The notes below the pieces were generated by a model that had not been told where the DNA came from, searched no databases, and was given only the letters and a program-made list of their open reading frames with translations. A program made the position numbers and the translations under genes. Positions 4,298 through 15,870 of a DNA stretch of 23,253 nucleotides are shown here, in pieces. Position 1 is the first letter of the stretch, and every line of letters begins with the position of its first letter. The stretch covers positions 1-23,253 of the forward strand of contig NIVC01003712.1 of assembly GCA_002269645.1 (NCBI GenBank), read 5' to 3'. Origin of the DNA: Macrostomum lignano (taxonomy: Eukaryota).

Positions 4298-4726
4298 TTA
4301 ACACGGCGGGTCTGGAAGTCTCCTTCCGGATGGGTCAGTCGGTTGTTCGTTCAGGTCGTCAAGCTCCCCGTATTCGTCGTATATTTCGGACTCGGGCATG
4401 TTGTAATAAACATGCTGCTCCGGCTGTTCCTGCTGCCGCTGCTGCTGCTGCTGCCGCTGCTGCTGCTGCTGCTGCTGCTGCTGCTGCTGCTGCCGCTGCT
4501 GCTGCTGCCGCTGCTGCTGCTGCTGCTTCTGTTTCTGTGGCTTAGGCGGTAGCTGAGGCTTGTCGAAATGATCAATACGGTCGTTTGACACTTTTTGTTG
4601 CTGCTGATTCTGCTGCAAAGTGCCAGTGCCAGTGCCAGCACCCATGCCAGTAGCTTCAGTGCAAGTCTGGTCTGCTTTGAGATAGCAGTCATCATTGTCA
4701 TAATCATCAAATTCCGAGGCTAGACC
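4298..4726 (-). CDS. CUB receptor terminal exon 15: acidic, polyQ and Tyr/Pro-rich tail
   Basis: ttcttgaattccag|GGT acceptor in frame with ORF 4298..4645; ends RRLPDPPC-TAA. Confidence 0.8.
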   Translation of the reverse strand, partial: GLASEFDDYDNDDCYLKADQTCTEATGMGAGTGTGTLQQNQQQQKVSNDRIDHFDKPQLPPKPQKQKQQQQQRQQQQRQQQQQQQQQQQQRQQQQQRQQEQPEQHVYYNMPESEIYDEYGELDDLNEQPTDPSGRRLPDPPC

Positions 4727-13700: not shown

Positions 13701-15870
13701 ATGCAGTCAATACCTGTTGCTATGCAGTCAATACCTGTTGCTATGCAGTCAATTCCTGTTGCTATGCAGTCAATTCCTGTTGCTATGCCGTCAATACCTG
13801 TTGCTATGCAATCAATTCCTGTTGCTATGCAATCAATACCTGTTGCTATGCAATCAATTCCTGTTGTCATGCCATCAATTTCTGAAAGGTAATCACCTGA
13901 AACTTGCGCGTAGTGCACAAGGAAGCCGCTGGTGCTCCACCGACTGCTGCTACCAGCAAATTCGGAACCAGCCGCCGCGAAGTTGAGAATCAGCTGGTCT
14001 GTTGAGCCGGCGCTGCTCGGCCAGAACTGAATCTCCGGCCGGGCAGCGGCGCCGCAGCGCCTCGCCAGCTCCCTGCCGCTGCCAGCCAGGACCGCCAGAC
14101 AGTCGCCTTCGTCCAGACTGACGTTTAAGAAGTTCAAAGCGAACCCGCCCGAGCCGCGGGTGCTGAAAATCCATCGCCAGGTGAGACCACCGGGACACCG
14201 GTTGCCGGCCAGGTACCGATTGCCGGACACGGTGCCGTTGGCGTTGGACACCTGGATCTGGCGATTGCAGTCTGCAGAAATCCGGCATAACAGTTGGTGT
14301 TAATGAGGGGCATCAATAACAATAATAAAACTGATAATTGCAGAAGCGTTCTGGGCACCCTGGAGCAACTTCTTCGACAACGCTCACACAAGGGTGTACA
14401 GCGGCCCTTTGACTTTCTAATCGTCAGGTAGGTGCCTCAAGGTATTAATGAGGTGCTCATCAGGTGCAGGGACGTCGCCATGAATGCCATGGCGGGGGGG
14501 GGGGAAAGTCAGGGATTCTTCTGCATGACTAAATTCCTACATTTTTGAGAACCGCTGTTGTTAGCACTTATTCTGGCGCTCTGAAGCAAAATTATTGATT
14601 TCCATCACGGTTCGCAAAGTGGCTCAGGGGGACAAAGATTGGCTGTCCTTCCATAGCTTTTACCATGGGGTGGACATGTCCCCCCTGCCCCCACACCCGG
14701 TGCCCTTGATCAGATGCTCGTGAGGTGCTCATAGGTGCACCAATATGCTCATAAGGTGTGCCAATATGCTCATAAGGTGCGCCAAGGTGCTCATAAGGTG
14801 CGCCAAGGTGCTCATAAGGTGCGCCAAGGTGCTCATAAGGTGCGCCAAGGTGCTCATAAGCCCCATGCAGTATCTATCCAGGATCTTACCAGCAGGCTTA
14901 TAGAACCTGTACACCAGCCGGAAGCCGGTCGCAGGCGGCCCAAACCCAGTCGCAATCATCGGCGACTGCAGCTTCGCCCGCAGGCTGACAATGGGGCCGC
15001 CGCTGATGTAGCCGACGCTGGCAGCCGAGGCAGCCGCGGCCGGGCCGCAGGCGAACATCTGTGGCCGCCAGCCGGCAGGGTCGGCCAGCTCGACGCAGTC
15101 ATCTGGGGAGGCCAGCCCGACAGACTCGAACTGCACGGACAGGGCTGAGCCTGGCGGCGCTTGCAGTTGCCAGGCGCAGCTAAGTGACGATCCGTTGCCT
15201 AGCAACCAGGTCGGATAGCCGGCGTGACTCACCAGCTGGCCGCCAGCGGCGTCGGAAGCCAGGGTCGGCCGGCCGCACACCGGGTCCTGGGCGGCTGCCG
15301 CAGCGGCCAGCAGAGCCGTCGAGATGACGAGCACCGCTAAGGGGGGTCCTCTGGCGGCAGCGTCTGGGGCAAATATTTGTAAAATTAATCTTACTGCTTT
15401 TCTGACCAACTCTGATTTCACTTATCTCTCCATCTATCTCTCCACCTATCTCTCCATCTATCTCTCCATCTATCTCTCCATCTATCTCCCCATCTATCTC
15501 TCCATCTATCTCTCCATCTATCTCTCCATCTATCTCTCCATCTATCTCTCTATCTATCTCTCCATCTATCTCTCCATCTATCTCTCCATCTATCTCTCCA
15601 TCTATCTCTCCATCTATCTCCCCATCTATCTCTCCATCTATCTCTCCATCTATCTCTCCATCTATCTCTCCATCTATCTCCCCATCTATCTCTCCATCTA
15701 TCTCTCCATCTACCTCTCCATCTATCTCTCCATCTACCTCTCCATCTATCTCTCCATCTATCTCTCCATCTACCTCTCTATCTATCTTTCCGTCTATTAA
15801 TCCATCCGTCGCTCCCAGATAAACAGCAAAAACTGCAGCACATAATCCGCAGGCTCCTACCTTTCGCCAT
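4298..15870 (-). CDS. 15-exon gene for a type I transmembrane protein with 11 CUB-like domains (about 1633 aa; CDS about 4902 nt)
   Basis: All 14 introns can be placed as GT..AG with matching phases and no stop or frameshift. Order: signal peptide, 10 phase 1-1 exons carrying 11 CUB-like domains, TM exon, three cytoplasmic exons. Confidence 0.88.
4430..4527 (-). repeat. Coding CAG repeat interrupted by CGG (polyQ with Arg)
   Basis: (CTG)n on the plus strand inside exon 15. Confidence 0.95.
4828..4908 (-). CDS. CUB receptor exon 14 (cytoplasmic)
   Basis: aaaattttag| acceptor and CAG|gtgggc donor; SSTAPEAGSSGGQNAQKNLYSREPAAQ; phase 0-0. Confidence 0.65.
5034..5890. repeat. 29-bp minisatellite CCCTCTGCCCCAGCCA(T/C)CTCACTCTCTAT in intron 13
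   Basis: Tandem units; accounts for the spurious ORFs 4761 and 5006. Confidence 0.95.
5906..5962 (-). CDS. CUB receptor exon 13 (cytoplasmic)
   Basis: ttacctttcag| acceptor (NAGNAG) and TCA|gtgagt donor; QSYRGTDSDSDEMELPDCS; phase 0-0. Confidence 0.7.
6063..6172 (-). CDS. CUB receptor exon 12: transmembrane helix (not in the ORF track)
   Basis: gttactttag| acceptor and AGG|gtaagt donor; ADPAPFPLAAVIGGAAGGAVLLLAAIIALIVFLVRR, a hydrophobic helix followed by RR stop-transfer residues. Confidence 0.9.
6190..6428. repeat. Degenerate GGGATC/GGGGAT tandem repeat in intron 11
   Basis: Read directly; includes a higher-order duplication of about 45 bp. Confidence 0.85.
6458..6862 (-). CDS. CUB receptor exon 11: CUB11
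   Basis: cccatccgcag|TC TGC acceptor; donor A|gtaagg at 6457 (alternative G|gcaagc at 6472); YEPNWRC..LEPGDRDSVQIFDG..FWTD..GFQLLF. Confidence 0.85.
6892..7380. repeat. (GAGT)n microsatellite in intron 10
   Basis: Read directly. Confidence 0.98.
7398..7769 (-). CDS. CUB receptor exon 10: CUB10
   Basis: gcccctcag|CC TGC acceptor and CCG G|gtgagg donor; YPAGLLCYWRI..GDCVHFYEG..HCG..GFGLTF. Confidence 0.9.
7849..8032. repeat. 19-bp minisatellite TCTGCACCCACCTCACTCC in intron 9
   Basis: Read directly. Confidence 0.95.
8110..8868 (-). CDS. CUB receptor exon 9: CUB8 and CUB9 in a single exon
   Basis: cccccgcag|TG TGC acceptor and GAG G|gtgaga donor; two C..CxWxI/L..DC..CG units. Confidence 0.9.
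9090..9290 (+). mobile_element. Diverged copy B of the SINE-like repeat (intron 8)
   Basis: Shares GTGCCTGCGT, (G/A)AATGGGCAG.A.TGCCTC and CAGG(G)TGC with the minus strand of 290-636, and GTCGAAG..GTTG..CCAGGGTGCCC with the minus strand of 14341-14428. Confidence 0.5.
9308..9665. repeat. 15-bp minisatellite AGACACCTCACTGCA, about 24 copies, intron 8
   Basis: Read directly. Confidence 0.97.
9714..10067 (-). CDS. CUB receptor exon 8: divergent CUB7, largely missed by the ORF track
   Basis: ctcttatag|CC TGT acceptor and GAT G|gtgagt donor; open frame CPTNGQTVHSTAGTIGSH..YYCSWNF..NSCAIIE..FLVRYF. Confidence 0.8.
10134..10562. repeat. 23-bp minisatellite ATCACTGTGCTCACCAATAGATC, about 18 copies, intron 7
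   Basis: Read directly. Confidence 0.97.
10600..10977 (-). CDS. CUB receptor exon 7: CUB6
   Basis: caccccgcag|AC TGC acceptor and TCA G|gtgaga donor; YAGGSNCSWRL..PGDCVSV..HCG..GFALRY. Confidence 0.9.
11000..11216. repeat. (TCTG)n microsatellite in intron 6
   Basis: Read directly. Confidence 0.98.
11225..11617 (-). CDS. CUB receptor exon 6: CUB5 (most canonical)
   Basis: cccgcattcag| acceptor (in-frame alternatives at 11611 and 11608) and CGG A|gtgaga donor; YPNNAECVWQI..LEACCDRVHVYEG..LSTD..GFRMRY. Confidence 0.92.
11660..12053. repeat. 16-bp minisatellite CAGCCACCTCACTCC(A/G) in intron 5
   Basis: Read directly. Confidence 0.97.
12088..12438 (-). CDS. CUB receptor exon 5: CUB4
   Basis: cgcttccag|AC TGT acceptor and AGA A|gtgaga donor; GYPDASYPANMDCNWTV..DCLIF..FCG..GFQLSV. 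Confidence 0.9.
12482..12863. repeat. 14-bp G-rich minisatellite AGCGGAGGAGGGGT in intron 4
   Basis: Read directly. Confidence 0.95.
12930..13283 (-). CDS. CUB receptor exon 4: CUB3
   Basis: ctcctccatcaag|TC TGC acceptor and ACC T|gtgagt donor; FCSWML..SCLTV..LCG..GFRMAW. Confidence 0.85.
13460..13880. repeat. 21-bp minisatellite GTTGCTATGCAATCAATACC(C/T) in intron 3
   Basis: Read directly. Confidence 0.95.
13897..14271 (-). CDS. CUB receptor exon 3: CUB2
   Basis: tttctgcag|AC TGC acceptor and TCA G|gtgatt donor; CNRQI..WRWIF..LDEGDCL..GFLVHY. Confidence 0.85.
14341..14428 (-). mobile_element. Internally deleted copy C of the SINE-like repeat (intron 2)
   Basis: CTCACACA.G.GTGTACAGCGGCC is shared with 428-451, and the 3' block is shared with copy B. 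Confidence 0.55.
14467..14708. mobile_element. 242-bp non-autonomous hAT-type DNA transposon (MITE)
   Basis: Flanked by the 8-bp TSD ATCAGGTG (14459-14466) / ATCAGATG (14709-14716). Imperfect TIRs CAGGGACGTC / CAAGGGCACC with subterminal G-run and C-run. Excising it restores a 33-mer identical to the reverse complement of 8991-9023. Confidence 0.75.
14735..14860. repeat. 21-bp minisatellite GCTCATAAGGTGCGCCAAGGT in intron 2
   Basis: Read directly, about 6 copies. Confidence 0.95.
14890..15363 (-). CDS. CUB receptor exon 2: signal peptide and CUB1
   Basis: tttgccccag| acceptor and G|gtaaga donor; VCG..LVSHAGY..CAWQL..DDCV..GFRLVY. Confidence 0.9.
15423..15787. repeat. 12-bp repeat ATCTATCTCTCC in intron 1
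   Basis: Read directly. Confidence 0.97.
15861..15870 (-). CDS. CUB receptor exon 1 (M-A-K plus 1 nt)
   Basis: ATG GCG AAA G|gtagga; the phase 1 join to exon 2 gives MAKDAAARGPPLAVLVISTALLAAAAAA-QDPVCG (signal peptide). Confidence 0.65.

Follow-up and report, generated by a model that had tools for sequence, protein, structure and literature searches.

Does the flatworm Macrostomum lignano possess a membrane receptor whose extracellular part is built of CUB domains only, and what might such a protein do? The question is raised by a minus-strand gene at positions 4298–15870 of contig NIVC01003712.1 (GenBank assembly GCA_002269645.1), the whole 23,253-nt stretch of which is referred to below as the window. 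A first-pass annotation of this DNA had proposed a protein composed of a signal peptide, eleven CUB domains, a transmembrane (TM) segment and a cytoplasmic tail of about 190 aa. Our analysis bore out this architecture: two hydrophobic peaks enclose eleven repeats, and the tail counts 188 aa. The locus is probably an intact M. lignano gene for a type I, CUB-only membrane glycoprotein, acting as a non-enzymatic surface receptor whose tail serves for adaptor docking and sorting. What was observed at this locus (gene structure, domain identity, signals of topology and the lack of further domains) is presented before the function is considered.

The gene model was assembled without the use of the earlier one, from minus-strand stop-to-stop frames (positions 4000–16300) combined with scans for splice sites and intron phase. 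It comprises 15 exons with 4899 nt of coding sequence and a product of 1633 aa, starts with an ATG at 15870, terminates with a stop codon at 4300–4298 and contains no internal stop. This independent rebuild reproduced exactly the span and the product length reported previously. All 14 introns (100–997 bp) are bordered by GT...AG, with donors of the gtaag/gtgag type and pyrimidine-rich acceptors. The phases are equally regular: the ten CUB exons are all 1-1, the TM exon is 1-0 and the three tail exons are of phase 0. A chance origin of the model can be ruled out, because the open, phase-consistent frame contains eleven copies of one domain. As the first-pass annotation remarked, the program-made list of open reading frames (ORFs) indeed has no entries for CUB7, the TM exon and the tail segments.

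The exons are given below in the order of transcription. Bit scores refer to the Pfam CUB entry (PF00431; cutoff 21.4 bits) and E-values to a hidden Markov model (HMM) for which 25 canonical CUB domains were taken from cubilin-like database matches; a slash marks a splice site.

15861–15870, minus strand: exon 1, start codon, MAK and the first base of codon 4; donor AAAG/gtagga
14890–15363, minus strand: exon 2, remaining part of the signal peptide (15363–15290, AAARGPPLAVLVISTALLAAAAAA) and CUB1; weak Pfam match (14 bits), canonical-CUB HMM E=8e-5
13897–14271, minus strand: exon 3, CUB2; Pfam-negative, Cys2 shifted, canonical-CUB HMM E=1e-3
12930–13283, minus strand: exon 4, CUB3; Pfam-negative, canonical-CUB HMM E=1e-3
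12088–12438, minus strand: exon 5, CUB4; Pfam 26 bits (above the cutoff), canonical-CUB HMM E=6e-9
11225–11617, minus strand: exon 6, CUB5, the most canonical repeat; Glu/Asp/Asp (E/D/D) Ca2+-binding triad kept, Pfam 36 bits, canonical-CUB HMM E=6e-18
10600–10977, minus strand: exon 7, CUB6; Pfam-negative, the weakest repeat by sequence, assigned with AlphaFold2 and Foldseek
9714–10067, minus strand: exon 8, CUB7; Pfam-negative, three cysteines, without an entry in the ORF list, assigned with AlphaFold2 and Foldseek
8110–8868, minus strand: exon 9, CUB8 (8868–8489; Pfam 28 bits) and CUB9 (8488–8110; canonical-CUB HMM E=4.5e-4) in a single exon
7398–7769, minus strand: exon 10, CUB10; Pfam 24 bits, canonical-CUB HMM E=8e-8
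6458–6862, minus strand: exon 11, CUB11; only two cysteines, E/D/D triad kept, weak Pfam match (15 bits), canonical-CUB HMM E=5e-7
6063–6172, minus strand: exon 12, juxtamembrane segment followed by the TM helix (6149–6069, LAAVIGGAAGGAVLLLAAIIALIVFLV) and RR
5906–5962, minus strand: exon 13, tail segment QSYRGTDSDSDEMELPDCS; 57 nt, phase 0-0
4828–4908, minus strand: exon 14, tail segment SSTAPEAGSSGGQNAQKNLYSREPAAQ
4298–4726, minus strand: exon 15 with the stop codon (coding part 4726–4301); acidic region, PxxPxK motifs, polyglutamine (polyQ) encoded by a (CAG)n array at 4413–4531, and the C-terminal Tyr/acid cluster HVYYNMPESEIYDEYGELDDL at 4414–4352

The count of eleven CUB domains stood, with the refinement that CUB8 and CUB9 share one exon (8868–8110). 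The repeats are 117–135 aa long and directly abut one another. Comparison of the whole model with Pfam yielded a CUB match of 134.7 bits distributed over 5 stretches; the other entries obtained were an overlapping CUB model of the M02D8.5 type and an artefact of the polyQ stretch (TFIIA). When the exons were compared one by one, CUB4, CUB5, CUB8 and CUB10 exceeded the cutoff, CUB1 and CUB11 gave weak matches, and CUB2, CUB3, CUB6, CUB7 and CUB9 were not detected. MAFFT alignment of all the repeats revealed the CUB signature (C...G.l.SH...Y....C.W......L...F....L....DC.....G.......CG...L...F......GF.l.y.). Four cysteines are present in nine of the eleven repeats, mostly at aligned positions; CUB7 has three and CUB11 two, and the displaced residues are Cys2 of CUB2 and the Cys3/4 pair of CUB5. 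Loss of disulfides is known from some CUB domains. The canonical-CUB HMM matched every repeat in register, with E-values ranging from 6e-18 (CUB5) to 4e-3 (CUB6) for Z=11 targets.

The five Pfam-negative repeats, taken together as a profile, were aligned by hhalign both with the four Pfam-positive ones (95.6% probability, E=1.3e-8) and with the canonical CUB alignment (95.3%, E=2.1e-8). Two of them, CUB6 and CUB7, were modelled with AlphaFold2, using the sister repeats as the input alignment. Both predicted structures are all-beta, with a predicted local distance difference test score (pLDDT) of 83 and a predicted template modelling score (pTM) of 0.79 for CUB6, and values of 75 and 0.70, respectively, for CUB7. 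In a Foldseek search of the PDB the top 50 matches of CUB6 were all CUB domains (TM-score ~0.7), namely those of neuropilin-1/2, C1r, C1s, MASP-1/2, PCPE-1, Kremen, TSG-6, enteropeptidase and Neto2. CUB domains also lead the matches of CUB7 (TM-score ~0.6), with a few other beta-sandwich folds interspersed. Judged from these sequence comparisons and, for CUB6 and CUB7, from the predicted models, all eleven repeats are homologous to CUB and belong to the CUB superfamily. Pairwise identity among the repeats is 17–33%, and a history of block duplication was rejected, as the pairwise score matrix of the eleven repeats has no periodic pattern. The low identity, together with the lack of a block-duplication pattern, indicates that the array is old and that its members diverged anciently.

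Pfam, run on the whole model, found neither EGF, LDLa or sushi modules nor a protease or kinase domain, in agreement with the claimed absence of EGF, LDLa, protease and kinase domains. Since the repeats abut, there is no space between them for EGF, LDLa (40-aa) or sushi modules. EGF or LDLa exons hidden inside introns were considered and rejected: the introns consist mostly of tandem arrays, and the repeats follow one another without gaps in the protein.

The Ca2+ site presents a different picture. In canonical CUB domains the E/D/D triad coordinates Ca2+ and binds basic residues of the ligand. Alignment to the canonical HMM revealed that this triad (..LE.., ..C.yD.., ..sD..) is kept in CUB5 and CUB11 only, while in the remaining nine repeats a deletion of ~4 residues after Cys3 eliminates the xYD motif. 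The array as a whole, with the acidic triad in two of its eleven repeats, does not qualify as one of Ca2+-binding CUB domains (cbCUB). Because nine repeats are devoid of the triad, no more than two of the domains can be expected to bind in the cubilin-like manner.

The topology was deduced from a 19-residue Kyte-Doolittle hydropathy scan, which showed exactly two hydrophobic peaks in the 1633-aa model. The first (aa 9–28) lies within MAKDAAARGPPLAVLVISTALLAAAAAA, followed by QDP, and has the composition of a signal peptide: an n-region with K and R, the h-region LAVLVISTALLAAAAAA and a small-residue site, with likely cleavage at AAA/QD. The second (aa 1417–1443) coincides with the TM helix and is followed by RR, i.e. 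by positive-inside residues. All 22 NxS/T sequons are found in the ectodomain, between the two peaks. This predicted layout, with an N-terminal signal, a single C-terminal TM segment and positive charges on the inner side, is that of a type I membrane glycoprotein.

Word-index searches, run once with the full model and once with the ectodomain, returned two proteins only, both of them M. lignano TrEMBL entries (A0A1I8HVB3 and A0A1I8FJL6); the sensitivity of this search is limited, as it scores only the 8000 candidates that have the most words in common with the query. A0A1I8HVB3 ("CUB domain-containing protein") is an unreviewed automated model of 1494 aa, partial and without functional annotation. 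Exon by exon it is 98.5–100% identical to the window gene over CUB1–6, CUB8–11, the TM segment and the C-terminal motif, the ectodomains differing by ~0.4%. It has no signal peptide, is short of 21 aa at the start of CUB4, omits the 19-aa exon at 5962–5906, contains a garbled CUB7 and a partly polySer polyQ stretch, and uses a TM-exon acceptor located 6 nt downstream. In this independently made model, too, CUB11 is followed by the TM exon and the tail. Judged from these identities, A0A1I8HVB3 represents either this very gene or a nearly identical duplicate of it; in the M. lignano assembly, 180 Mb consist of duplicated blocks with ≥95% identity (PMC5730564). The second entry, A0A1I8FJL6, is a chimeric model, in which CUB exons have been wrongly fused to the antisense translation of a neighbouring gene region, that of the ALK/LTK-type ORF at 20447–20668. 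The protein is already known to databases as an uncharacterised partial model, and what is added here is the full-length one: a clean 1633-aa sequence with the signal peptide, CUB7 and the 19-aa tail exon, in place of a damaged public prediction.

Comparison of the two models points to candidate sites of alternative splicing. At the TM exon two acceptors stand in tandem with a spacing of 6 nt (6160–6172, minus strand; ttag/CTGCAG/ATC), and A0A1I8HVB3 uses the downstream one (6166). Exon 13, an in-frame segment of 57 nt skipped in that entry, may be a cassette exon.

The tail is 24% Gln and contains 31 acidic and 16 basic residues as well as 8 tyrosines. No Pfam domain was matched in it, and its Gln-rich, net acidic composition suggests that it is disordered. 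The polyQ stretch corresponds to the coding (CAG)n microsatellite at 4413–4531 (minus strand), which is shorter in A0A1I8HVB3, a sign that the repeat is polymorphic in length or contains assembly indels; its most likely role is that of a variable spacer. Despite the differing polyQ, the 39 C-terminal residues, HVYYNMPESEIYDEYGELDDLNEQPTDPSGRRLPDPPC, are identical in both models. They include a cluster, YYNMPESEIYDEYGEL, of tyrosines in acidic context, where Y1598 fits both YxN and YxxM (YYNM) and Y1610 fits YxxL in acidic context (YGEL); two PxxPx[KR] motifs (in the form PxxPxK) lie upstream of it. When the tail was shuffled, the presence of four tyrosines in a 13-aa window had p=0.04, that of tyrosines in acidic context p=0.01 and that of two PxxPx[KR] motifs p=0.003. 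The first-pass annotation spoke of a "signalling tail". Such a tail of ~190 aa does exist and does carry linear motifs; signalling itself is unproven, no recognisable domain is present and the statistical support is weak, so that a signalling role can only be inferred.

More distant relatives were sought by an exhaustive HMMER search of 1.84 billion representatives, with the exon of CUB8 and CUB9 as the only query. It yielded 51 matches, the best of which reached 98 bits, with identity of ≤36%. Most of these matches are cubilin-length proteins of canonical CUB domains, with or without EGF repeats. None of the 51 has the layout with a C-terminal TM segment; one, P0035 (5156 aa), has scattered hydrophobic segments. 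The best sequence matches in the PDB were PCPE-1, cubilin CUB5–8 and neuropilin-2, which start in CUB5 of the window protein and, in the best cases, extend into CUB6. Matches to the Shaker K+ channel over the TM segment and the low-complexity tail were set aside as most likely compositional artefacts. A search with the tail alone, from which polyQ had been removed, gave no matches, not even A0A1I8HVB3 with the same tail, and with its positive control failed it is uninformative.

A clear ortholog among the described receptors would, according to the first-pass annotation, have refuted its reading; none was found in the word-index, HMMER and PDB searches, the power of which was limited, as even the M. 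lignano protein was not recovered from the HMMER library. The claim that it is lineage-specific agrees with the word-index searches, which produced M. lignano entries only, but is not established, since the negatives are weak (a single-exon HMMER query and uncertain coverage of flatworms). Literature on the accession, on CUB proteins of Macrostomum and flatworms, and on CDCP1 contained nothing on this protein. As far as the sequence goes, the gene product is apparently a lineage-restricted member of the class of CUB-containing single-pass receptors.

What could such a protein do? By analogy with known CUB proteins we infer a non-enzymatic, cell-surface binding receptor. The partners of the eleven-CUB chain would be extracellular proteins or glycans; CUB5 and CUB11 at most would use the classical Ca2+-dependent acidic-triad site, and the other nine domains would bind differently or serve as spacers. 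The tail would be a docking and sorting platform, in which the YxN, YxxM and YxxL/YxxPhi motifs of YYNMPESEIYDEYGEL and the two upstream PxxPxK motifs could, after ligand engagement, recruit SH2/SH3 adaptors or AP-2 in the manner of CDCP1.

Some of the same features could also be read in terms of an endocytic or scavenger receptor, which would capture ligands as cubilin does, possess its own TM anchor and be internalised through YxxPhi signals (YYNM, YGEL) with no phosphotyrosine signalling. The closest sequence relatives are indeed cubilin-like multi-CUB proteins, cubilin CUB5–8 and PCPE-1 being among the best PDB matches, the acidic tail has two motifs of the YxxPhi type, and the cubilin-type Ca2+ triad is kept in CUB5 and CUB11. 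However, the triad responsible for binding Ca2+ and basic residues is missing from the other nine repeats, identity to the cubilin-like proteins is ≤36% per domain, and EGF repeats are absent; moreover, the tail contains neither an NPxY nor a dileucine signal, and YxxL/I is present in 38% of shuffled tails. We consider this explanation unlikely, although it deserves some credit. We give little credence to the idea of a fast-evolving adhesion or recognition molecule, engaged in cell-cell or self/non-self contacts of gametes, mating partners or immune cells, with a tail of little importance. CUB proteins do recur in reproductive recognition (spermadhesins and ascidian Themis-type proteins), no species other than M. 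lignano yielded an ortholog in the searches, the repeats show strong divergence, and the ectodomain is predicted to be heavily glycosylated. The two near-identical copies, however, with their ~0.4% difference in the ectodomain, give no sign of diversifying selection, and the missing orthologs may reflect the limits of the searches.

That the protein serves ionotropic receptors as an auxiliary subunit or clusters them, as NETO, SOL-1 and LEV-10 do, seems very unlikely. The general layout is shared (an N-terminal CUB array, a single TM segment and a non-catalytic tail), and GluK2-Neto2 structures were recorded by Foldseek, but only as generic CUB matches; LDLa is absent, there are eleven CUB domains as opposed to 2–5, and no specific sequence similarity was seen, SOL-1 and LEV-10 not having been compared directly by sequence. 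The least probable explanation of all is that the model has been over-joined, the true product being a secreted protein of eleven CUB domains, terminated through read-through behind CUB11, with the TM and tail exons belonging to another transcript or remaining unexpressed. Read-through at the donor of exon 11 does lead to a stop after 10 codons, and trans-splicing and polycistronic precursors are widespread in M. lignano (PMC5730564). Against this, the phase-1 donor of exon 11 fits the phase-1 acceptor of the TM exon, introns 11–14 have canonical sites, the four downstream exons share one open frame up to the stop codon, neither a start codon nor a signal sequence precedes the TM exon, and A0A1I8HVB3 contains the identical join.

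The non-enzymatic receptor with a docking and sorting tail, which we favour, also has points that weigh against it. The proposed function is argued from domain analogy and from short linear motifs, which are often chance products; the shuffling p-values are modest and take no account of the segregation of the polyQ block. Docking of SH2/SH3 adaptors and AP-2, phosphorylation and the ligand are all putative. The signal peptide and the TM segment are predictions from hydropathy. Splicing and expression of the gene are predicted from the genome sequence and unproven, A0A1I8HVB3 being itself only an automated prediction. Finally, a transcript retaining intron 11 would run on for 10 codons to a stop, so that a secreted 11-CUB isoform is possible besides the membrane form.

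A bolder version of the favoured reading would see in this protein a macrostomid- or flatworm-restricted CUB-only receptor that has dispensed with the Ca2+ site in nine of its eleven domains and signals via the C-terminal acidic tyrosine cluster, i.e. a CDCP1-like phosphotyrosine scaffold evolved independently in a spiralian. We regard this as quite unlikely. YYNM, which combines YxN and YxxM, recalls the YMNM motif of CD28, and DEYGEL is hemITAM-like.

The introns of the gene have a peculiar composition of their own. Twelve of the 14 contain exactly one distinct tandem array each, with a period of 4–35 nt and a length of 138–860 bp; the two array-free introns are those of ~100 nt. The arrays fill 22–93% of their introns and start 3–65 nt downstream of the 5' splice site. 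They are located as follows:

15423–15797: intron tandem array
14723–14860: intron tandem array
13465–13879: intron tandem array
12483–12864: intron tandem array
11662–12052: intron tandem array
10999–11221: intron tandem array
10133–10563: intron tandem array
9307–9668: intron tandem array
7849–8062: intron tandem array
6892–7387: intron tandem array
6256–6428: intron tandem array
5030–5889: intron tandem array

Arrays account for ~43% of the whole window, as compared with a genome-wide figure of 15% for M. lignano (PMC5730564). Those of introns 5, 8, 9 and 13 share the 9-mer AGTGAGGTG, of which 57 copies were counted, all of them in the gene-sense orientation, where chance would give 0.4:

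5035–5734, minus strand: AGTGAGGTG-bearing array, 29-nt unit
7869–8010, minus strand: AGTGAGGTG-bearing array, 19-nt unit
9311–9664, minus strand: AGTGAGGTG-bearing array, 15-nt unit
11682–12038, minus strand: AGTGAGGTG-bearing array, 16-nt unit

The 9-mer contains GTGAG, which resembles a 5' splice site, and these introns therefore carry long runs of sense-oriented decoy donor sites. Donor-like AGGTAT and GGTGAG were also found in the arrays of introns 3 and 7.

Several other features were recorded in the window on both sides of the CUB gene:

1460–2613, plus strand: two adjacent ORFs with weak matches to rhodopsin-family G protein-coupled receptors (7tm_1, 25.6 bits, below the cutoff; Srsx, weak)
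18194–18514, plus strand: cysteine-rich ORF (CSQLKNISVRSVIECALECRGADCVAVAWFN...PRCQLL), PAN/Apple-like by eye, without a Pfam match
18508–19174: tandem array directly after the cysteine-rich ORF, with a 32-nt unit whose junction reads AGTGAGC on the sense strand of the ORF
20447–20668, plus strand, possibly extending to ~21976: ORF matching the ALK/LTK glycine-rich domain (PF12810, 29.5 bits; cutoff 24.5)
20748–21397: 33-nt tandem array downstream of the latter ORF, accompanied by glycine-rich ORFs

The first of these is probably a G protein-coupled receptor gene, convergent with the CUB gene and split by an intron or a frameshift, while the region of 20447–20668 may be part of a flatworm ALK/LTK-like gene or of another gene containing a glycine-rich domain.

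The CUB gene provides an example of an array in which the Ca2+ site has been lost in most units. Its function can be tested, as M. lignano is amenable to RNAi, in situ hybridization and transgenesis; the findings have no bearing on any long-standing open question.

How does the protein compare with known members of the CUB superfamily? With cubilin it shares a long unbroken chain of CUB domains, and proteins of cubilin length were the best HMMER matches of CUB8 and CUB9. Cubilin, however, is a peripheral protein with 8 EGF repeats and 27 canonical Ca2+-binding CUB domains but no TM segment, whereas the flatworm protein has no EGF repeats, only 11 CUB domains (two with the Ca2+ triad) and its own TM segment and tail, and its identity to the cubilin-like proteins is low. 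The neuropilins, CSMD/SEZ6, LRP3/10/12 and DCBLD resemble it as CUB-containing type I receptors, and in the structural comparison neuropilin CUB domains rank first for CUB6 and near the top for CUB7; the FA58C/MAM, sushi, LDLa and LCCL modules of these receptors are absent from the flatworm protein, as judged by Pfam.

NETO1/2, SOL-1 and LEV-10 are auxiliary subunits of ionotropic receptors with 2–5 CUB domains; NETO and LEV-10 carry LDLa, and SOL-1 is composed of 4 CUB domains and a TM segment. All of them are single-pass proteins with an N-terminal CUB array and a non-catalytic tail, like the protein described here. Unlike NETO, LEV-10 and LRP3/10/12, the flatworm protein has no LDLa detectable by Pfam, and its repeats abut. 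None of the 51 HMMER matches was SOL-1-like with a C-terminal TM segment.

The nearest functional analogue, in the sense of a protein that works alike, is CDCP1. This vertebrate type I protein has a divergent, CUB-only ectodomain, a single TM segment and a non-catalytic tail of ~150 aa, whose tyrosines are docking sites for Src-family kinases. CUB-only ectodomain, one TM segment and non-catalytic tail are all found in the flatworm protein, which differs in having 11 CUB domains against the few of CDCP1, in its unrelated tail motifs and in the lack of any detectable sequence relationship: the whole protein did not match the CDCP1-specific CUB models (PF23665, PF23668) at E≤1, whereas canonical multi-CUB matches do. 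With its unusually long chain of eleven CUB domains, the M. lignano protein extends the small group of CUB-only single-pass receptors exemplified by CDCP1 and SOL-1.

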